From Polymyxa betae A26-41 (taxonomy: Eukaryota; Protista; Endomyxa: Phytomyxea): 64,000 bases of DNA. Positions 2,018 to 19,920 of this stretch are shown piece by piece. The stretch is from contig RBZT01000751.1 of assembly GCA_003693705.1 (NCBI GenBank), positions 1-64,000 on the forward strand. The letters run 5' to 3'. Made by a program: the position numbers and the translations under genes. The first letter of the stretch is position 1; the number at the start of each line of letters is the position of its first letter. The notes under the pieces are model-generated. The model saw only the letters and a list, made by a program, of their open reading frames with translations, made no database searches and was not told the origin of the DNA.

Positions 2018-4090
2018 ATGTTTGGTCGAGCGATTCCCTTCTTGATACTGTGTCTATCTGTGTGCCTCGCTGCATTCAGTCTTGGACCTAGTAATGTTAC
2101 AGACTCATTGAAGGAGACTCCTGATAGAGTCTTTCCTTTCGATCTCAACGTGAGTGTCTATAATCTCGACCTCCATACTTTTAACCCTAAACCCTAACTG
2201 CTGTTTCAGGAAGAGGTCACATCTCATCTACCTGATCTTGGAACACTATCAACACCAATATCCCTATCACTCCATACAGATATTGTTCCGGTTTTACCTC
2301 CTATTCATGAATTTATCAATGTAATGTCTCTCCTTATCAAGTTTAAGTTGTTGATATTTTATCAATCAGAATGAAGAATCAGTTGAAACTATATCCGGGA
2401 AACGTTCTCGTATTGACGAGACATCATCGCTAACCGACCTTCCATGTTCCTTCAATCATGATGTGATTGATATCAATGATTATAACAGTCTCTGCAAGTT
2501 TTTGGTGAAGTTTGAGGAGCCTTATGTCTCTCTGAAAATTGACTATATATTAGAGCAAAGAGCCGAATGATGAAGAACTTCAATCTCTGTCTCCAAAGTC
2601 CGATTGTGATGCAGTTCAAACATCCAAGATCGACTTTCATTTAGTTATCAATGTGTTAGGACATGACATTGATGTGAGCGAAACCAGACGAATCCGTTTT
2701 GCTCAGAACACATTACAAAAGCTGATTCTGATTGCGAATCTGTATCGGAAATTGATCTGGGCCTCCTGGAACTATGAATGGAGTTGGTTGAAGGTTGATG
2801 GGAGAATACATTATTGGATGTATCGAGTGTGTCGTCCTGTGCTCCGATGTCTCATGGAATGCTGTCAGAAAGATCTCCGGAGATTTCAAACAGTTTGGGG
2901 GAATCTCTTCTATCATCGGAAACTCCATCACGAATGTTCCGGAAATGATTGCCGATCTAAATTGTCAGCTGTTGATCAGTCTATGAATCTGGTCCGAGAT
3001 AGTTCTTTCATCTCTATCGACCTTTCTGATCTTCAAAGTGACCAAAATCCGTGCTTAAAACGGATGAAATTTTGCGCACCACCAAAGAAACGCATTCTGA
3101 CTCTTTTTACCGTTGTGCCTGAATTTCTGAAATCTTTTGATTTTGGGGTGGAGGAGATCACAGACTATATTACTCTGTGTGCTTTTCTGGTGAGATTTAT
3201 TCATTTTGAACGGAGAATATCACACTGAAACTGTCATTCAGCAAAAGCAGCCTGATGATGACGAGTACGCGTTTCTTACTGATACGAACAAATTAATCAA
3301 ACCAAAAGGGAAAAAAAAGTCGTAAAAGACCCCCATATTATCAAAATTCTCGATAATCAGCTCATATTGACCGAAACCTCGGAAATCTCATCTTCGAAGA
3401 CCACGTTACAGAAGTTGATATTGGTGGCCAGTTTATGTCTAAAGTTAGTTCGGGCCAAGATTACCGACCCGAAATTGAGCATGAGACGTGATAGATGTGA
3501 GAACTGGCTACAGAAAACATGTTACTCAGTACTTTCATGTGTTACAATATGCTGTCAGAATGATCTTCGGACTTTTCAATCTCGTTGGGGAAATCCGTTT
3601 TTGCACTCTGAGTTTCGCACGCTTTGCCTAAGGCACAATGGCAAGAGTAAACAGTGCGGACTTGAAACTCTCATTGCCCGTGACAATATGAAATACTCCA
3701 TCAAATCACAACTAGTTGGTGATAGAGAAGGACTTGATCATTGTCTATTGAGATATTCTATGAAAGGATTTGAGACGGTATTACTGTGTTCAGGTTTTAT
3801 TTGTAATTTGTGAATTTGTCACAGAACCTCATGTTGGAGTGTATTCAGCGAATGAATGATGAACTGAATGATCAGAATTTGAATCCATCATCTGATCTGA
3901 GTGAGTATATCGGACATTCACTAAATCCAATATGTACTGTCTTGAACATCATTGTAATAATGATGTCAATTATTTCTCTCATATATTTGGACATTATATA
4001 GATCATTATCAATTTCAACACAATTACTGTCCTGGACCTACTGAACAATGTCCTGCTCTATCTGCAGTAAATGCTAACAAGAATATTTAA
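2018..4090 (+). pseudogene. Paralog 1 of the secreted triple-repeat family (signal peptide, FDLN, three YR-C-terminal-like domains); two 1-nt frameshifts
   Basis: ATG 2018 gives MFGRAIPFLILCLSVCLAAFSLG. Five GT-AG introns sit at the same positions as in 8627-10702 (e.g. 2150-2209, 3778-3824). Collinear with that copy. Frame breaks at the A8 run 3311-3318 and at ~3932. Stop TAA 4088-4090. Confidence 0.75.
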
Positions 4091-4169
4091 ACATAAAAAC
4101 ATGGTTCAATTTGACTCCGCTCTACAAGTTCCTAAACTCCATATTTACTGACTATCTTTCCTGCCTACA

Positions 4170-4760
4170 ACAGCTGGCCACATTGCCTTACAAACATAAA
4201 AAGTAGTTAGCACCATAGTAATAGATGAGGCTGAAAAGTTAGCAAAACTTGCAAAAGAAAATAGATCTTCATTTTATACCCTGTCTCACGGATAAAATCC
4301 CTGAAAAATGTTTTTGTAAGAAAGTAGGAAAGATAATGTCAAACGAAGTCATTTTACAAACTATCCAGAGAGAATTTCTTTAAGTGATGGATATCTGAGA
4401 GTCCGACAAAGGAGATACATATTCCTCTTGAAAAGAAAATGCGCTTTAAACACGAACAGGCTATACTTGATGTAGAGTACATCTTAAAAGGTAATATTGG
4501 CATTGAAGAAGATAATACTTGTAGACATTGCGACAAACATCCTGACACAATCGAACGTAAATCAGTGCTAAAACCTCAACTCGCAATTACAGAGATATCG
4601 ACGCAAAATACAAAAGACGAAAACTCGCAGATTTCAATAATGCACTCCACCTAGAAGAAGAATTCATGAGAAGATTTCCTGCAAGCAGCTCATATGCACG
4701 GATGCTTCGTATAGCGAGGTACTGATGGATAGCTGGATGCCTTTTACTTGTGCTATCGCA
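4170..4760 (+). mobile_element. Possible retroelement relic (RNase H-like TDAS motif, CxxC)
   Basis: LICTDASY at ~4689-4712 and CRHC in ORF 4439-4654. Frames are broken; weak evidence. Confidence 0.2.
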
Positions 4761-5032
4761 TGTTCTTCATCATAGTGACATCGTCCTCACAATTGACTCC
4801 ATGAACTAACCTTGATGCCGTTTCCTGATCCCCAGGTCGACAGGCGACTCTTATGAACGGCCCGGGTCGGCCCAGAGCCATCAAGGATCCGTATCGATCG
4901 GCATTCAATCAAAGTCTCTGGATAGTTTCTATGTCGTGCCAACCATGTTGAATCCGTTCCTCCCAAGATTACTAAATGCTCGTCCCGCTAAGTCCGAACC
5001 GAAGAATGCCTCTGTAAAGTAGGATAGAAAAC

Positions 5033-5058
5033 CGCCCAATCGAACAGGGACTCGAACC
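5033..5058 (-). other. tRNA-Lys(UUU) 3'-half-like fragment (B-box or PBS-like)
   Basis: Minus strand reads GGTTCGAGTCCCTGTTCG-attg-GGCG, resembling the T-arm and acceptor of tRNA-Lys. No 5' half is present. Confidence 0.35.
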
Positions 5059-5755
5059 TTTGTACCAAACTTCACCTAATACGTCCCTACTCAATGTCCT
5101 GCTCTCAGTCATTACCTGGTTATATGAAGCATCCGTGCTTATAAGCTGCTTGCTGGAATATTCTCTTGAATGTCTGGAATGTTACGTGATGCGAATATCG
5201 CTGCGGATCTGGATAGAAATGGTGATATTTTGTGGAATCTCTGCCTTCCGTTCTTAAAGTCATGGTTCAGTGATCCAGCCGCTGACGATCTCGTGTTGAT
5301 TCTTAACAAGTTCCCGAAGTACAATCTCGGTAATTGTGACAGCTAGGATATGATAACATTATTAATGATGGGATTTAGCTCTAGACCCGATATAGGTATT
5401 TCACCAGCCTGAATATGATTCATTCATTGAACAACACATTCAATATTCCTGCTTTTTCGACTTCTTAGTATCAGTGCTGCCTTATCTTAGCCCCGACCAG
5501 CTCCTTCCAACCGATCGCATCCAAGTACAATGTATAGAAATCGAAAACGATATCTCGTTAGTCCATCCTTTTGGAGCAATTAAACTTTCGCAAATCAAAC
5601 GTAATAAATATGGTAAGCTATATGAATAGATCTGTATTAATAAGTCCGATGGTATCTTCTTGTACAGTATATGACAAGACGATTATGAAGGCGATATCAC
5701 TACGATGGGAAATCACAAGTAGAAGGCATCGTGATCGGGTCATAAAAAAAATGAA

Positions 5756-5837
5756 AGCCGTTGACGAGACTTGAACTCGCGCGGGCAGAGCCCAAATGAT
5801 TTCTAATCATTCTCCTTAACCACTCGGACACAACGGC
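5756..5837 (-). tRNA. tRNA-Ser(AGA)
   Basis: Acceptor GCCGTTG/CAACGGC; D-arm TCCGAGTGGTTAAGGA; anticodon arm AATGA-TTAGAAA-TCATT; long variable arm GGGC-TCT-GCCC; T-arm GCGAG-TTCAAGT-CTCGT; T-run terminator downstream. Confidence 0.93.
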
Positions 5838-6368
5838 GACTTATATACGGATCCATCAAAGCGCTATCTCCACTACTTTATCATTGGAGCTCCGAACTTC
5901 CAACGGAAGCACTCCTGCTACTGCACGTCCGTCATCCAATCATCTACTTTGAATACAACTCACTCTTTCTTCTAACCCTATTGTCAACTGCTATTTTAAC
6001 CAGATTTTACTTTCTACTTCGGTCTCCGCCCAAACAAACAATATTCATGGCCGACTTCCTGACTCACTCTTACTAGAAAGGCTGCTACATAGAACGCTTA
6101 AGATTGGAATCTGGGAAACCAAGGCTCGAGTCACTTTAGGGTTGGGCGGGTGCCCACCCTACCTCATCAATGGTTCAATATAGATACTACTAACATTGCC
6201 GATCGAGATAGAATCAAACAGATTCGGGTGAATTGAATAACAAATTCGAAATTGGAACTAGAAGCACAGCTAGATATTACGGTCAGACGCCTTTTAAAGA
6301 TCCAATCCAATCCTTGCAGAAGATCTCGGATTTTGAGCTCTATATAGATATAGTCGGTAGTAAAGTTT

Positions 6369-6940
6369 TCAGATCGTTGAAAGTATAGTGAAAAACTGAC
6401 CCGCTTGTAGAGTTCCTTCAAGTGAAAAACCCGACAAGGACATCCGGAGTGGAATTTTCTCATGTTTGATGGTCGGAAAATCGGCTTTCACTCCAGCAGT
6501 GTTACGAAATACTGTAGCGATGCCTCCACAGAACATTTGTAGGGTTTAACTCGCCCATTGAACATCTTTCAGCGAAGCAAGCGTCTACAGCAGCTTTAGT
6601 ATGTCGCTCGTCTTGGTATCCAGCACGTAATGTACAGGAACCGTCCTCAATCCATTGGATATCAGCATCAGAAATCCCGTTACGATGCAGGCGCGCTTTC
6701 ATTCGAAGAATGATCGAACCGAATTCAGATCCCCTTAACTTGACAAGCTCTTATGGCATGACAGGAGGGGTCTTGTTCTGCGATGCTTCATTCATGGCAT
6801 CCCATTCTGCAACCACATTCGGAATACCATCCACCAATTAAACAAAAAGCTGGGAGGCTAACTTAGCAATGTTGTCTTGTTCTGAAAGTGGAATCTGACG
6901 CATAGCTTTCATCACGTGCGAGCTTAGATCATCGATAAAG
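6369..6940 (-). mobile_element. Degenerate hAT-like transposase, C-terminal part
   Basis: Minus frames give ...PPVMP*ELVKLRGSEF... and FCGGIATVFRNTAGVKADFPTIKHEK...SLSGFSLEGTLQAGQF. This resembles the FCGGLATVFPNTATVESDFS...SLEGILH dimerisation-like region recalled from oomycete hAT-like transposases. Stops and a frameshift are present. Confidence 0.65.
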
Positions 6941-8626
6941 TCACTGAAAATAAAAACCTTTTTCTCCAAAAATGGAAATTTATTTAAAAACAAGAACTTT
7001 TTTATAAGAAATCGCATTTTGAGCACCCTTATTTAGGGCTCGCTGCGAGATCTATTTAGTGATATTTAAGTACCATCCCCATACAAGGGCCCTATTTAAA
7101 GAGGGCCGGCTATAACCGCCAAACGCGATCTGATCCCGATCTTCGCATCTGGAAACTCCTCGACCTACTTGGGCCAGTACGATCCGCAGCGGTTCACATG
7201 GCAGGCGACGCTGGGCGCCGGACGACCCGCTGCTGGGCGCGTTCGTGTACGTCTTTCTTTCGGACAAAATTCGGACTTGCTTCTTCAATACGGCTCGTAA
7301 ATCCGCAAACCGAACCCATCGTCGTGCTGGCCCCGGACTATTGATCTTCAGTTACGAAAGTCGACGATCGGCTCCAGCTAATTGCTGAGGACTCCGTGAC
7401 GCACCCCGAACGCTTGGAATTCAGTGGGTGTTCGGCCCGGCAGCGGTCCGTGTCCGAAAGCGGACTGATTGACGTGATCACGGAGTTTGAGCGGGATCCG
7501 GACGAAATCAAACGGACTGATTCGGTCGATTTTCAGATCGTCGTTGTCCCGAGTTGATCTGATAAATGATACGGATATGATCTCTTGTACTTAAAACGGG
7601 TCTTTAATCAACATATGAGGCATAGAACGCAATTGTTTCAAACTATTTAATGTAACAATCGCTATTGCATTTACAGGAAAACGAGATCATGATCGAGGCG
7701 AGAGATCAGTGGCCATGATCGTTGTTAACTCTGTCAAAAACAAGCACGATCTGCTGTTTCTGCATCTTGATTAGATCGTTAAGTCGCTCAGATTCTGGTT
7801 CTTGTCGTTACTTTTACAATGAGGCACTTGAAAATGGCGGCTGAGTGATCTGAACACCATCATATGGTCGGCGTTGCCACATGCTTCGACAATGATGACG
7901 CAAATATCACAGGCTTGATCTTCTCTGTACCATGCAGCTGATTGATTTCTGTGTTATTAACAGGGACCGACATTGGCACCAAACATGGCGCACAACCACT
8001 AAAATCTGAGTAGGAAAAATTCCTTAAAATAAAGCTTTCTTTATCAAACTAAACATCAGCAGCGGTCTGACAGTTTCAAACGGTTACTAAAAACACGACT
8101 AGATAATATCGAGTTACTTTTCGCTGTCTGGTTTTAGAGAAGGGTTGGAAGCAGATGGTACAAGCAGCCATAGTTATACGAAGAGTTCCTTTTTCAAAGA
8201 TCAGGGTGATACTATCGACCGAATATTTTCGATAAACGAAGCTAATAGGAGCACGACCGGGTTTCATAGATGCATTTGCATGGTGTCATGGAGACATCGT
8301 AGGTCGCTGCTGTTCAGCCCGCAGCTTCTGCAGAGAACGAAGAGAGGCCCGGATTGAGGGTCTCAAACAATCCGACCTTCGTTCATACTTCAAATAAACT
8401 TCGAAAATTATGCTTGCTTGGGGGCTTTACTTGGTATTATCATAGAGCTGATTTTAAAAAGTTTTATCAGTAATTAAGAATAGGAGAATAGTAGTTATTG
8501 TTAATAGAACGGATGTCGGTGGAATACAGGTTTGTCAGGTCTCAAAGAAAGTAGTTTGAAAATTTTCTGTAATAAGAGAGTCTACGGTTTTATAGACCGA
8601 GGTTCACACTCCATTTGTTTTTGATA

Positions 8627-10702
8627 ATGGTTGGCCCAACGATTCCCCTCCTGATACTAAGCCTATCTGGGATCTTCGCTTCATTCAGTCCTGGGCTTGT
8701 TACAGACTCATTAGAAGAGACTCCTGATAGAGTTTATCCTTTCGATCTCAATATCAGTGTCTATCCTCCCGATATCAATGTCAGTCTCTATAATCCCGAT
8801 CTCACAGACACAGGAGTCACATTGCTGTATCAGGAAGAGGTCGCATCTCTTCTACCTGATATTGGAACACTATCAACATCAACATCTTTATTACTCCATA
8901 CAGATCTTATTCCAGATTTACCTCCTATTCAGGAATCTATCAATGTAATGCTTCCGTATCGTGCCCCATGTCTTAGAAATCTCTGAGATTTTCTTAATCA
9001 GAATACAGAACCTGATGAAACTCTCTCCCGGAAACGTCCTCGTATTGACGAGACATCATCGTCAACCGAATTTATGTATTCCTTCAATCATGATGTGACT
9101 GATATCAATGACTATAAAAGTCTCTGCAGTTTTCTGGTGACTTCTAGTGAGCCCTTTTGTCCCTCTGTATATTGACTATATATTAGATCAAAGAGCCGAA
9201 TGATGAAGAACTTCATTCCCTCTCTTCAGATGATGCAGGTCAATGCTCCAAGGTCAACTGTCAATATGTTATCAAAGTAAAAGGACATGATCTGGATCTG
9301 AGCGAAATCAAACAACTGCGTTCTGCTCAGAGCACATTACAGAAGCTGATTCTGATTGCGAATTTGTATCGGAAATTGATCTGGGCCTCCCGGAAATATG
9401 AATGGAGTTGGAAAGCGATTGATAGGAAAATCCGGTATCTCCTGTATGAGGTGTGTCGTCCTGTACTACGATGTGTCATGCGATGCTGTCAGAAAGACCT
9501 CCGAACGTTTCAAACTCTCTGGGGGAATCCCTTCAATCATTGGAGTCTCTATAAGAAATGTTCCGGAAATGAATGCCGATCTAAACTGTCTGATCTGTCT
9601 ATGAATCAGGTCCGAGATAGCTCTCTCATCTTTATTGACCCTCCTGCTCTACAGAATGACGAGAATGCCTCCCTAAAACGATTGAGATTTAGTTCACCAC
9701 CGACGGATTTCGTTTTGCCAATGTTTACCGTGATGTCTGATTCTTTTGCATGGTTTGATTTTGGTGTGGAGAAGATCACAAACTACACTACTCTGTGTGC
9801 TTTTCTGGTGAGATTTATTCATATTAAATGGGGAATCTCACACTGATTTTTCAATTCAGAGAAAGCAGCCTGATGATGACGAGAACGCGTTTCTTACTGA
9901 TACGAACATATTATTTTCATCAAATGGCAACAAACACGCTGCCAAAGCTCCCATTTCTATCAAAGTTCTCGATGATCAGCTCATATTGACCGAAACCTCG
10001 AAAATCTCAACTTCCGAGAGCACGTTACAGAAGTTGATATTGGTGGCCAGTTTATGTCTAAAAATAGGTCGGGCTAAGATTACTGACCCGAAATTGAACA
10101 TGAAACGTGAAGGATGTGGAGTTTGGCTGCGGCGAACATGTTACTCAGTACTTGCATGTGTTCGAATATGCTGTCAGAATGATCTTCGGACTTTTCTATG
10201 TCGATGGGGAAATCCGTTTATGCATTCTGATTTTCGGACGCTTTGTTCAAGGCACAATGGCAAAAGTAAACAGTGCGGATTTGAGGCTCTCATTGTCAGT
10301 GACAATATGAAATACTCCATCATATCACAACTAGTTTGTGATAGAGACGGACTTTCTCATTGTCTATTGAGATATTCTATGAAAGGATTTCAGACGGTAT
10401 TACTGTGTTCAGTTTATTTGGATTTTCTGATTATACCACAGAAGCTCATGTTGGAATGTATTCAGCGAATGAATATTTACCTGAAGAAGCGGCAGAATCT
10501 GATACATCCACCTGATCTGAGAGAATACCGCCGAGATTCTCTTCATCCAATATTATACTGTCTTGAACATCATTGTAATAATGATGTCAATTATTTCTCT
10601 CATATATTTGGACCGTATATAGATCATTATCAATTTCAACACAATTACTGTCCTGGACCTACTGGTCAATGTCCTGCTCTATCTGCAATGAATGCTCTCT
10701 AG
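8627..10702 (+). CDS. Paralog 2, intact ~605-aa predicted secreted protein: signal peptide, FDLN motif, RKRPR NLS-like motif, three tandem YR-C-terminal-like domains (candidate effector)
   Basis: Exons 8627-8779, 8834-8944, 9002-9136, 9187-9807, 9860-10396, 10442-10702 total 1818 nt and stay open throughout. All introns are GT-AG, 45-57 nt, phase 0. N-terminus MVGPTIPLLILSLSGIFASFSPG. Confidence 0.8.
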
Positions 10703-11145
10703 AGGACTTCAATCAGTAAAGAATTGTTGACTTTGACTCCGTTCTACTCCATATTTTTCAATCATAAAACGAATCACCCAACAAAACAAAGATTCCAATT
10801 TGTCCTATTTCTGCAATGGCGAATTCTTTATAGATGCAAAAGCGGATTCGCTTGCGGTCCTCCGAATCTTTTCAACCACTTCAGAATAGCCTTGAAAAAT
10901 TCTATCAATATTCAATATAGCATATCGGTGTCCAAACATTACAGCAGATTTCTGACGGCCAGAAGGCTGCCACTTCATCCTCGGGAATCTCAAAACCTCG
11001 TCCTGAAATGATCTCGAATTCTGGGCTCTAACTAGATCTTGTCTGCTGATTCTGATCATGACTGCAAACAGGCATGTCCTGTATATAATGTATGGAAGCA
11101 GACTTAGTATGTTTGAGGGGGATTTTCGTGTAGACGGATGATGGA

Positions 11146-11210
11146 GGACAATGTCCTGCTCTATCTGCGGTTAATGCTGATTTGAGTATCTGCTCAGTAA
11201 AAGAATGGTA
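11146..11210 (+). repeat. Third copy of the 3' end of the triple-repeat genes
   Basis: caatgtcctgctctatctgc (GQCPALSAVNA) matches ~4046-4066 and ~10668-10688. Confidence 0.7.
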
Positions 11211-11689
11211 TTCTATCTGTAGCGTGTTTCAGCCAGGGTTTATGTAGATAGAATTCCTTAAGACGCGGGGTGTGAGGGTGCACAAAGGACCAGAAAGGAG
11301 CCCGAATCGATCCGTGAACATTATGATATCGTGAGATCTTACAAGGTCAAGGATGGCGTCCGATCAAAATGAGATAGACGACCTCGGAATGTTTGGATTG
11401 AATTGGATTGGATTCGACGAGTTTAGATGATTATACACGAGGGCGGCGATCTTTCCCATCACACAGGGCTCGGAGATCGAAGTCGTAACGTAACAACTTC
11501 GGCGGATACTCCGAGTTCTCTGGGATTCAGAGATACCGGAATTTCGCCCTTCCACGGCAACTTTTATGAAGGCGTTGCCTGATCCAACGGCCTCTGAGAG
11601 CAGTTAACTGTTGACAAATTATCTGAGCATAGACCAACGAGCTATTCAGTATCAGGGTAGTCACTGGACCAAATCCGTACGCATTCGAG

Positions 11690-12200
11690 TCAGCGGCAGG
11701 CGAAATTCGTCGCGCTGGCCCGCGACTTGTGCGAACAGCAACTGCGTAATTTCATTTGACCGGACACCTTGTCGGATGTGATGCCGAACGCGGAACAGCT
11801 CAAGAAATCTCGGCCGGCTGTGTTCGATTTGTTGTTCGGGTAGGGTTTAGGGTTTACGAATTGAAGTGTGCAGTTAATGTTGCGTTTGGTAGTTTGATGC
11901 CGGAGGCGTTCCGCCTCTTGAACTCCGAACAGCAAGTCACGGAGATGACGTCGATGAGGTCTTTGAGCTCACTAAACTTGCTGGCGATGATCCTCTTGTC
12001 TGGTGGAAGACAAATAAGTAAGAATCGCTTACTTTATATTCAATTGCTGGCAACAGATTCATTTATGGCAGTGGCTTCTTCGGGGGCGTCCGAATCGCTT
12101 TTCTCGGACTGTGGTCATTTTGTGACTGGAGAGCGCTCCAGGCTTTCAGATACTCCAAGAAAACTGAAACTTCGGGCTTGGAATCGTCCCGAAATATCGA
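11690..12200 (-). mobile_element. Possible gag-like relic
   Basis: Broken frames with an eroded knuckle-like LSCSAFGITSDK. Interrupted by a telomere-like motif at 11838-11856. Confidence 0.25.
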
Positions 12201-12280
12201 AAGAAATGTAAAAACATTTCATCAAAATTACAGAACGTTTTGTAAAATCGTGGTAGATGCCTTTAAAGCCTCATATTAGG

Positions 12281-12322
12281 AACCGATTAGCTGTCGGCTA
12301 ACCGGTTACATAAGCGGTTAGC
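12281..12322. repeat. Cluster of three inverted AACCGGTTAGC-like motifs
   Basis: AACCGATTAGC (12281-12291), GCTAACCGGTTA (12297-12308), TAAGCGGTTAGC (12311-12322). Confidence 0.7.
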
Positions 12323-13245
12323 GAGTTAGTGGCGGACATTTAGCCTGTAGGCCGTCACCGGAGCCGTGCCGACCCCTCGATCTCCAGTGTTTGGGGCGTT
12401 GGTGTAGTTGGTTATCACGCATCGTTCGCAACGATGAGGTCGCGGTTTCGATTACCGCACGCTCCATCTGTTCTTTTTGTAAGCAGTGATTTCTGATACC
12501 TATCTCATAGATGGTCTGATATAAACGTGCCAATGAATTTCCAGATAATTTTGTGATTTCACATGAAGTTAAGGAAAAAAACTCATAGTATCGCATCGAG
12601 TTCTCACCAGACGAATCGCTGAGATTTCAGTAATGCTCGGGTGGTTCCATCTGAAACGAGATGGCGTTGTGTGGAATCGGTAGCGATTCATTCATTGTTA
12701 TAAAGGATGTCCACTACGAAAAGGAAGCAGCAACTACGATCTTTGTGCTCGTTCCCACTTGGTCACAGCGATTATGAATGACGAGAAAGCTCATCGGCTC
12801 CTGCTTTATTGCGAAACATTCCAGATTCCGCATCCTAAAACAAGCATGATTTCCGCTCCGATTCCCAATGGATTTTATTATTCAGAGCGGTAATAAACGA
12901 AGCTTGAAAACACAGCTGAGGAGCAGATGCATCCGTCCATATTATGATTATATCAGGGACAAAAAATCACACAGCTGAGAATTATTAGGGTTTAGGACTA
13001 GGTGGGATAATGTGAATTTGGCAGAAGATCATGTAATGTGCTATTATTGATGTGCTGCGGGGGTGATGCAGACAAAAGTGCGCGCATTTTTCTCCAGAGT
13101 GGCTGACTCACACATGCAGGATGTTGTATCATGCACGAATCCTTCTGCATTGCTAATAAAGAAGCCAATAAGATTTAGGAATAAAGTCCCAATTTATGAA
13201 CAAGTGAAAAATTATTGATTGCATCTACTGTGAATTCTGTGGGGT

Positions 13246-15716
13246 CTACAATTGGCAGTTTTCAGTGGTTCCAGAACAGATTTTCGAAAAAAGGCGATGT
13301 CGGTACAAAATCGGAGCCGCGCCCCAAGAATCGATAAAATTCTGCTCATGGCCATGGAAGAGGCTGTCAAAGCAAAGCATCAAAGGTCGCAACGTCTGTG
13401 ATTCGAAGTTTCGAAAAGCATTAGAAAACTGCTTCCGCTCGACCCGACTGGAGCTGCTGGCAATTTGCTGAAAGAATCGAAGTTTTTCGAGTCCATTCAG
13501 TGTCTGCAAAGGCGTGCGATCCACGTCGAAGTCGCCAAAGGTCTGCTTCCGCCGGACTGTGGTATTCGCAGCATGAGGAGGAGCTATCACAACAGAATCG
13601 GGCTGGGGAATATGGCGGTCACATCCCAATTCGACGTCTTCCTGAATTTCCGAGCCAGATTCAAGCGCACTTACCAGGTTCATATTCGCCACCGCCGATG
13701 CGGTAACTGTAGCTGATTGTCGAACATGTTCCATCATCTTCTCCACCACCGACTCCAGTTGAATCACCAATTCGGGGCTTGCGGAAGCCTTGAACTTCCC
13801 AAAAAGCTCCTGGTACTGCTGATAAGGGCTTTCGTCCACATGGTCCGATTGAAGAATAGCCTGGCTTAGCCGTCGGTAGCTTATGTCGCGGCCATCTTCA
13901 GTGAAGCCCAGAAAATGGCGAGCCTTCAAACTTTCCATGAACTCGGCAGCTAAAACCGCCAGGCTTCGGGTTTCATTGCCCGGTCGACGTGAGTGAATCG
14001 TAAGGTTCTCCCGAATTAGGTGACCGTTCTCAATAGCAATGGACTGCCATTTTGGTTGAATCCTGCTCATGATATCGTCACTATAGAAACAATAAATCCA
14101 GAATTAATCAGCAAGTTAAAATCAGACTTACGGAGCCGTCGCCTTAATCATTTCGATTATTGTTCCGGCATCGTTATAATATCGTTGAGCGTTAACATGT
14201 GCAACATGCCTAGCAGCCTTCATAGCGTCAAGCATATTTGCGCCATACCAAGTGGCGAAGAGATACGCCGTCTTTCGAGCACAATGAAGTCCAAAAGGGC
14301 CTCTAGGACGCAGAAGCTTCTGACATAGGTCCTGGAACACATTGAAGAATTCTGAATACTGCATGGGGCGGAGAAACTCTTGGTTAGGGCCAGAATCGAA
14401 CCATTTCTTGCAGGGAAACAGGCAGCCTTCTGTGAGACCATTCGATCCAAGATGAGCGAGCAGATGCGAGATTGCATCAAACTCTGGGACATCTCGATCT
14501 CGGTGGAGCAGCAGCAGCGTCTTCCGATCTCGACGTTTTTCCGTCTTCCCATCGACCCATACTGCAAGCTTGTCAACGACATTCGATTTAATCTATATAT
14601 ATCAGAATTAAAGAGCCAGCTGATAAAACTGTTATGCAAACTAACCACGAAAAATCTCTCCTCAAAATCGCTAAAAAGCATATCTTGCCCATCGCCATTC
14701 CGTAAGAAGAGTTTAACGAACAGGATAAAGATTGTGTAAAGCATGAAATAATATGGGTCGTCCTCTTTCATGCAGAAATCCCGCAGAATCAACACTTCTG
14801 CTGGTGTTAGCTGCGTTACCCCATTTGACACATTCTTTCAAATCCTTTTTGATACGCGTGAAAGCGTTCTCGAACAGAAGAGATTCGTTTGGCATTCCTT
14901 TCCGCCAGATCAGCGGAGTGGGAGCGTGCCGATCGCAGCCAGAGCGGTTGGGAGGATTCTTCTGGCGCTCTTCAATACAGTTCGAGCACAAACCTTGATA
15001 GCCTCCTCGATGATCGAAGGCTTCATGAATACTCTTAATTGCAGACCCCATTTGGGAAATATTATCAGGATTCGCCCATGTACCAGAGCAGCTGATCTGT
15101 AATCCAGTAAAAACACTTAATACAGGAGATCCATCAGTGCGTGATAAAGGTGCTCCCTCTTCAAAAGTTCTCCAGTCCATATACAGCACTGAAAAAGAGT
15201 AAATTTCCAATGCAGAATTCAATCAGTAAACTTACGAATCGATTCCACGTTCATTGCCGGAACGCTTTCAGGGGCGTCACGAAGCAGAATTATAAGGGAC
15301 TCGAAATCCCCTATTATCGATAGAAAGTACCAAAGACCACGGAGATGCTTTTCATAGGCAACCTTGGAAGCGGGTTCAAGAGGACGATCATCAAACCAGC
15401 CCCGATCCGGCCTTCCAGAGAATCCAGGACGCCGCTCCATTCCCATTCGAGACAAAACAGTGTCGATTTCAGTTAAAACAGCTGCATTCAGCGCATGAGA
15501 TAATTTATAAACCTTTTTTTAGGGTTTCGTTGGTCTTTCAGCACCCAAGATGGTTCGTTCCTCCATGTTTGCAGGACGTCGTACCCGGCGTCGATAAACG
15601 GGTGCAGAGGTTGCAGATGGTGCAGGCCGCAGATGCAATCGGCGCGGCCTCTGAATTTTGTGATGCACCTTGTGATGCGGGCTGTATACGGGCTGTGATG
15701 CGCGTGATGCGGACAT
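13246..15716 (-). mobile_element. Crypton-like tyrosine recombinase gene, 4 exons, ~770 aa if repaired; one in-frame stop and one frameshift
   Basis: Introns 15235-15189, 14645-14593 and 14131-14081 (GT-AG). The spliced product carries the YR catalytic set: LFLR(NGD), DGKTEK, GLHCARKT, ARH, QRYY. N-terminal CSNC-x12-CDRH motif. TAA at 15519-15521; frameshift at ~14832. No RT or gag attached. Confidence 0.85.
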
Positions 15717-19446: not shown

Positions 19447-19920
19447 ATGTCGGGCAAGGGAAAGGGAGGACGCGGCAAGGCCAAGGGCGGCAAGTCGCAG
19501 ACCCGTTCGTCTCGTGCCGGTCTGCAGTTCCCAGTCGGGCGTATCAACCGTTTCCTTCGTGATGGACGTTACGCCGCTCGTGTCGGAGGTGGTGCCCCAG
19601 TCTACCTGGCCGCCGTTCTTGAATATTTGGCTGCCGAAATTCTCGAATTGGCTGGTAACGCCGCCCGTGATAACAAGAAGACCCGTATCATTCCTCGGCA
19701 CATTCAGCTGGCCATCCGAAATGATGAAGAATTGAACAAGCTGCTGCACGATGTCACCATCGCTCAAGGTGGTGTCCTGCCTAACATCCACTCGGTTCTC
19801 CTGCCAAAGAAGAAGGCCGGTGAAGGTGCCGCCGCTCCTGCCCCGACCACGAAGAAGGAGACCCCAGCCAAGTCTGTTGCCAAGAAGGGCGGCAAGCAAT
19901 CTGCCTCTCAAGAATTCTAA
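19447..19920 (+). CDS. H2AX: Histone H2A with H2A.X-type SQEF C-terminus
   Basis: [46 protein letters not shown]; ends SQEF. Confidence 0.97.

Follow-up and report, generated by a model that had tools for sequence, protein, structure and literature searches.

How does the C-terminal domain of a transposon-encoded recombinase come to stand three times over behind a predicted signal peptide, and what might such a protein do? The question is raised by the start of contig C592 of Polymyxa betae, an obligate intracellular parasite of sugar beet roots and vector of the rhizomania virus, where two paralogous genes, copy A and copy B (about 80% identical in DNA), lie beside a Crypton-type tyrosine recombinase (YR) in a 64-kb window, by which we mean the whole stretch of DNA analysed. 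Copy B is intact and copy A broken (Table 1). The copy B product, 605 aa long (623 aa with the first intron retained), consists in order of a predicted signal peptide, an acidic Pro/Ser/Thr-rich region, a short exon with the motif SRKRPR, which resembles a nuclear localisation signal (NLS), and three repeats; its first open reading frame (ORF), with the acidic region, has a net charge of -13. A preliminary description of the locus saw in the repeats a module taken from the C-terminal domain (tail) of a YR, multiplied and fused to a secretion signal. We followed this up with genome-wide searches of the 27,085,814-bp, 1,001-contig P. betae assembly, in which the spliced copy B model was searched one exon at a time and broken copies were kept broken; the draft genome was published as 1,001 contigs, 27,085,946 bp and 45.1% GC (PMC6328671).

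Judged from sequence comparison, the repeats almost certainly come from the last ~95 residues of Crypton-type tyrosine recombinases. The ungapped core P-x3-C-x11-F-x3-[WF]G, which the preliminary description had pointed out, can be read in the tail of the window YR and in all three copy B repeats, far beyond chance, and the replacement of P by S in repeat 2 is likewise there, as a peculiarity of this copy, most paralogs having P. The comparison of profiles proposed at that time gives significant similarity: profiles built separately from 31 repeats and 7 YR tails align in hhalign at 97.4% (E 1.4e-11), with reversed and 40 column-shuffled decoys reaching at most 2.5%. A deeper tail alignment gives 99.4%, some of its members having been found with the repeat profile. 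Retrieval works in both directions, since a profile of YR tails only recovers the repeat genes across the P. betae genome and a profile of repeats only, also proposed earlier, yields 88 matches among 1.84 billion proteins, among them full-length YRs that it hits at the very C-terminal end; one of these is a Plasmodiophora brassicae protein annotated as Tyr recombinase. One unrelated YR, used as a single query, matches the repeat exons directly. This reciprocal retrieval, together with the conserved N-termini described below, bears out a transposon-derived module that was multiplied and joined to a signal peptide, and the paralogs do combine a predicted signal peptide with the lack of a YR catalytic region.

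Copy B belongs to a large family. Searches with its exons returned 153, 142, 119 and 95 matches in P. betae, and the list for the last exon implies more than 100 loci, about 55 of them with a stop-free, near-full last exon; one sampled locus has four repeats. The start Met and the hydrophobic core are conserved over 36 copies, with the Met in register in 31, and hydrophobicity and conservation together predict a signal peptide. Splice dinucleotides are kept in about 90% or more of copies, and the core of the NLS is similarly stable (of 29 stop-free copies, 23 keep RKRP and 27 keep RKR). A 54-nt intron at 8780-8833, inside the first ORF of copy B, is likely, because other copies show GT...CAG ends at the same stretch and because in five of them that stretch has a stop or a length that is not a multiple of three; it brings the gene to six exons. 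Beyond the gene, homology between copies is mostly lost within 50-270 nt on the upstream side and about 70 nt on the downstream side, at ragged ends, and the flank comparison found no defined termini beyond the gene that are common to the copies. Such short common flanks fit a shared promoter and untranslated region rather than transposon ends. We therefore reject the reading of these genes as internal ORFs of a multi-copy transposon, and very probably they are host genes, as first proposed. A promoter-like motif resembling AAAACTGCGCGCAGA occurs 50-90 nt before the ATG in many family copies; copies A and B have diverged from it. There is also a second P. betae family, closer to the YR tails, in which three tandem tail domains share one exon (L031, C329:2923-4053; L033 on C166; and C721).

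Within the family, pairwise ratios of nonsynonymous to synonymous substitution (dN/dS) are 0.5-0.7. Invariant columns are 9-30 times as frequent as in a simple neutral simulation (23 against 0.7 expected, and 49 against 5.3), and in each of the two large exons three sites exceed the simulated variability, where 0.1-0.2 would be expected. These hypervariable sites occupy equivalent patches in repeats 1 and 2, where the long helix begins and directly before the third Cys. Diversifying selection at these sites is suggested, a grade that we choose because the simulation leaves out recombination and rate variation. We read the many broken loci as birth-and-death evolution of the family.

The architecture recurs outside P. 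betae. The Spongospora subterranea protein A0A0H5REK9 (CRZ07019.1), 639 aa long, has a signal peptide, the DY-x-SLC-x-FL linker motif of the P. betae family and three domains. Protein models of this species derive from a de novo transcriptome (PMC4471660), and A0A0H5REK9 is part of a SignalP6 secretome, modelled there with a confidence (pLDDT) of 55.9, under that study's cut-off (PMC12503489); it is the best evidence for signal peptide and repeats on one mRNA. In the tree, the first domain of a close homolog, P0003, falls with repeats 1 and 2 of P. betae (SH-aLRT 97-98), and the family therefore predates the split between Polymyxa and Spongospora. A 130-aa protein (P0225) labelled Bacillus sp. 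SRB_28, from a contig of 391 bp, is closely similar to the family member from Spongospora and probably reflects contamination of the Bacillus assembly. Gene-dense metagenome contigs (L077 and L079, both from ENA GROS21-1; L083, from SRR27418475) carry intronless, clustered signal-peptide genes with one to three tail domains. A RhoGAP gene neighbouring those on L079 has 40-44% identity to early-diverging and other fungi, which points to a fungus-like eukaryote as the source. In the free domain tree, which is unrooted and poorly resolved, the metagenome domains fall among different YR tails and apart from the plasmodiophorid ones; the test of topologies does not reject one clade of plasmodiophorid and fungus-like secreted families (p-AU 0.104), and with it one common origin.

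The neighbouring YR had been regarded as a donor-type element, a view that does not hold. Its ORF is frameshifted, while the catalytic R, K, H-x-x-R, H/W and Y are all present in order, and it aligns lengthwise with full-length YRs, among them the P. brassicae Tyr recombinase. Against the repeat profile its tail reaches 16 bits, compared with 30-43 for the majority of the other P. betae tails and up to 60 for metagenomic ones, and in the tree it groups with two other YRs, apart from the repeats. We reject the adjacent copy as donor on its low tail score, its position in the tree and the age of the family, which is older than the Polymyxa-Spongospora split. Adjacency is itself to be expected, because at least 18 related YR loci and more than 100 family loci occupy repeat-rich stretches of this genome. 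A copy 95-97% identical to the window YR lies on contig C790, the common DNA stopping at 13034; a tRNA-Ala(CGC) gene lies at 12392-12468 (+), about 570 nt past this end.

At two loci the N-terminal part of the family, its header, is joined to a YR. At C323:97-2168 (-), homology to the N-terminal and catalytic parts of a YR comes after matches to the first exon and the NLS exon, in one open frame of 518 aa as judged from match coordinates; C40:1014-3217 (+) has, on the same basis, this order and frame with one stop. Similar YRs are found at C84:285-1346 (-) and C47:17516-18565 (+). The fusion product could be a secreted, nucleus-addressed recombinase. Our reading of the fusion is a later capture and not the ancestor of the family, because its header is as near copy B as are those of ordinary paralogs.

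What kind of domain is repeated? The preliminary description had invoked the GCR1_C domain of fungal Cryptons, which we can retain as an analogy only. PF12550 matches none of 37 YR tails and no tail or repeat locus; it finds 28 places in the P. betae genome, none of them on the window contig, and we reject identity with GCR1_C. The negative is informative here because the 28 places elsewhere in the genome act as a positive control. At 23 places the GCR1_C match is over the cut-off, some in frames of 480-535 aa, and CryptonF-type elements or genes derived from them probably coexist with CryptonS-like ones in P. betae. CryptonS elements are described by Kojima and Jurka (2011; PMC3212892) as being without GCR1_C while having a conserved C-terminal region. 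The YRs whose tails we tested likewise lack GCR1_C and end in a conserved region, and the domain fits the published description of the unnamed CryptonS tail. As for the 5-6 bp terminal direct repeats of these elements (mostly TATGG in CryptonS), no convincing pair was found around the window YR; TATGG is scattered around YR homologs, which could be chance.

Pfam has no match in any family exon, YR tail or homolog, and PDB by sequence and fold, as well as viral and Atlas libraries, gave nothing significant for the domain. AlphaFold2 models show the same order of helices in repeat 1 (pLDDT 80) and a YR tail (pLDDT 86), and neither model matched a solved or predicted fold, the best Z scores (5.5 and 4.4) belonging to unrelated helical bundles. 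P, C and W are invariant across YR tails. The residue four after the invariant Cys, which sits with it on one helix in the models, is nearly always His in the YR tails (27 of 29), and the repeats have either His or Cys there; this position together with a later Cys pair suggests a zinc site. The last Cys of the putative site is variably spaced; the Cys/His pattern and the interchange of His and Cys are compatible with zinc binding. As modelled, the domain is small and helical, and its C-x3-[H/C] motif is followed further on by two Cys. The net charge is +14 for repeat 1 and +10 for repeat 2.

From these observations we propose the following course of events. The C-terminal domain of CryptonS-like YRs was almost certainly captured in an ancestor of the plasmodiophorids, set in tandem behind a signal-peptide header and then spread by gene duplication to the more than 100 loci of P. 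betae. The intracellular parasite would secrete the proteins, which carry a predicted NLS and would reach the host nucleus; there the mostly basic repeats, stabilised by zinc, would bind host DNA or chromatin, as the YR tail presumably binds the ends of its element. Changes at the hypervariable positions might shift target preference or escape recognition, and the acidic Pro/Ser/Thr-rich part may serve as a flexible linker or activation region. CryptonF elements have a DNA-binding domain at the position equivalent to the tail (PMC3212892). To the whole of this, that is, Crypton-tail repeat proteins that are secreted, host-nuclear and bind nucleic acid or chromatin, we assign a probability of roughly 0.45. 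Its parts differ: secretion is probable on the predicted signal peptide, action in the host nucleus is on balance favoured by the NLS-like motif, and binding of nucleic acid or chromatin, predicted from the domain's make-up, is tentative. It is tempting to go further and imagine a transposon-derived eukaryotic counterpart of transcription activator-like (TAL) effectors, in which each repeat reads host DNA with a few hypervariable residues setting the target, built separately in plasmodiophorids and in the fungus-like organism and with the header-YR fusions as ongoing capture; we consider this unlikely.

Several points weigh against the proposal. Only about four of 15 sampled family loci seem intact, and no RNA run is listed for P. 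betae, where expression and splicing are predicted. The domain has no fold or family match in Pfam, PDB or the fold libraries that would give it, or the YR tail itself, a function. Cys-rich domains of secreted proteins often make disulfides rather than bind zinc. Repeat 3 is near-neutral (+1), one Spongospora domain has a charge of -2, and no clear NLS was seen in A0A0H5REK9.

Some of these points suit the main rival to DNA or chromatin binding, which accepts the same origin and secretion and sees in the domain a protein-interaction scaffold that kept no DNA binding, acts on nuclear or cytoplasmic proteins of the host, and has variable patches that follow its targets or immune receptors there. 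Helical modules set in tandem, each with a constant core and a surface that varies, would be expected of such a scaffold, the repeats are not uniformly basic, and repeats 1 and 2 are far diverged from the YR tails. That the His/Cys set and aromatic core of the recombinase domain are retained in all repeats and in the fungus-like family, and that the NLS is conserved, speaks for binding of DNA or chromatin without excluding a scaffold, which we regard as possible if doubtful. It is improbable, by comparison, that the proteins act inside the parasite, as domesticated repressors on Crypton ends or regulators of its own nuclei, with an N-terminus that does not serve export to the host. Crypton domains have repeatedly been turned into host nuclear factors (PMC3212892), and at least 18 related YR loci are present, but a cleavable-type signal peptide is conserved in 36 copies and recurs in the Spongospora and fungus-like homologs, and it would steer the protein away from the parasite's own nucleus.

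Two further readings concern origin and status. Many broken copies, the repeat-rich stretches beside YR elements and a fairly high overall dN/dS might be taken to mean that the genes ride as passengers in a multicopy mobile element or are its internal ORFs, or that the expansion is for the most part without function; yet they have no shared termini, their introns, signal peptide, NLS and core residues are all conserved, and transcripts of a second genus encode a homologous architecture, so that this very improbable reading is already largely refuted. Nor do we find it credible that transfer ran the other way, from the secreted family to the YR elements: the domain tree, unrooted and poorly resolved, would allow it, whereas the tail ends YRs from many unrelated samples, P. 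brassicae included, and the secreted forms are patchy and lie in separate parts of the tree.

Table 1. Features of the family genes and the tyrosine recombinase in the 64-kb window.
Feature	Position	Strand	Basis or remark
Copy B, intact family gene	8627-10702	+	All introns GT-AG, phase 0, stop-free
Copy B, six exons	8627-8779, 8834-8944, 9002-9136, 9187-9807, 9860-10396, 10442-10702	+	First intron likely
Signal-peptide-like N-terminus, ~19 aa	8627-8683	+	Hydrophobic core, small residues at likely cleavage site; conserved in 36 copies
Monopartite NLS-like motif SRKRPR, short exon	9026-9043	+	RKRP in 23/29 stop-free copies
Repeat 1, Crypton-tail domain, C-x3-C ... C-x4-C	9265-9591	+	Repeat profile/alignment, model
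Repeat 2, C-x3-C ... C-x9-C	9947-10285	+	Repeat profile/alignment
Repeat 3, last-exon part, C-x3-H ... C-x6-C	10442-10681	+	Best match of single-YR queries
Copy A, broken paralog with copy B's exon plan	2018-4090	+	Frameshifts near 3290-3310 and 3932-3944
Lone fragment, 3' end of another family copy	11146-11207	+	Family DNA match
Decayed, intron-containing Crypton-type YR	13246-15716	-	Frame breaks near 15518 and 14835; 5' end uncertain
YR catalytic residues	R ~14702; H-x-x-R ~14286-14277; H ~14208; Y ~14181	-	Motifs read directly
YR C-terminal domain homologous to repeats	13249-13554	-	Leu at His/Cys position in this copy

Some smaller features of the window may be added. The QTKL motif of copy B arises across a splice junction. 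Telomere-like AACCCTA units lie inside the first intron of copy A (2150-2209). Between copies A and B are a tRNA-Ser(AGA) gene at 5756-5837 (-) and a repeat at 4332-5171 with 62-nt inverted arms (4676-4737, 5097-5158), possibly a small non-autonomous element, which is also found beside two other family copies (L004, L064). A histone H2A ending in SQEF (H2A.X-type) is encoded at 19447-19920; the remaining genes of the window are ordinary housekeeping ones.

Crypton domestication is already known, as are, among the Crinklers, effectors with mobile-element cargo. In the literature searched we found no description of a secreted tandem array of a Crypton tail domain, an earlier mention in Zhang et al. 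2016 or two Decroes 2022 papers being possible, and no paper joining Crypton with plasmodiophorids, nor Crinkler with tyrosine recombinase. The family suggests an undescribed set of host-manipulating proteins and offers a concrete candidate for the manipulation of host cells by plasmodiophorid virus vectors. It also defines an unnamed domain without known fold and adds secreted proteins to the outcomes of Crypton domestication; the functions of Crypton tail and repeat can be tested together by the same simple assays. A structure-based survey reported no large (n over 30) effector clusters in P. betae (PMC12503489), with which a family of more than 100 loci contrasts; its Spongospora member was modelled below the confidence cut-off of that survey.

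Among known systems, CryptonS elements supply the nearest counterpart, their conserved C-terminal region being likened here to the repeat domain; their published hosts are oomycetes and a diatom, with no plasmodiophorid among them, and the available part of that account (PMC3212892) reports no host gene derived from a CryptonS C-terminus. The yeast proteins Gcr1, Msn1, Hot1 and Ndc10, derived from the GCR1_C domain of CryptonF, are alike in that a Crypton C-terminal domain was domesticated into host genes (PMC3212892). They differ in having another domain, present once per protein, and in acting inside the cell in transcription or at the kinetochore, where the P. betae proteins are secreted tandem arrays by prediction. 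Crinkler (CR) effectors are reported (Zhang et al. 2016) to join an N-terminal header to mobile-element-derived domains, with an NLS, large expanded families and many pseudogenes, a plan that the P. betae family resembles. Its header, however, is a classical signal peptide with a low-complexity region, no LxLFLAK or ubiquitin-like header and no Pfam match being seen in the family N-termini, and what it carries is a tandem domain without catalytic function in place of a nuclease or kinase. Oomycete (L)WY-repeat and Albugo CCG effectors are likewise secreted tandem arrays of small modules with a conserved core and variable surface. We know of no transposon origin for either. No WY effector was among the listed structural matches, although a weak match is no proof of a different fold; the CCG modules differ in including beta-sheet and disulfides (PMC12503489). 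TAL effectors, finally, offer a possible functional analogy, with an NLS, tandem repeats and variable residues at fixed positions. There is no homology, three large divergent domains stand here against many near-identical 34-aa repeats, and DNA binding by the P. betae proteins is a proposal.

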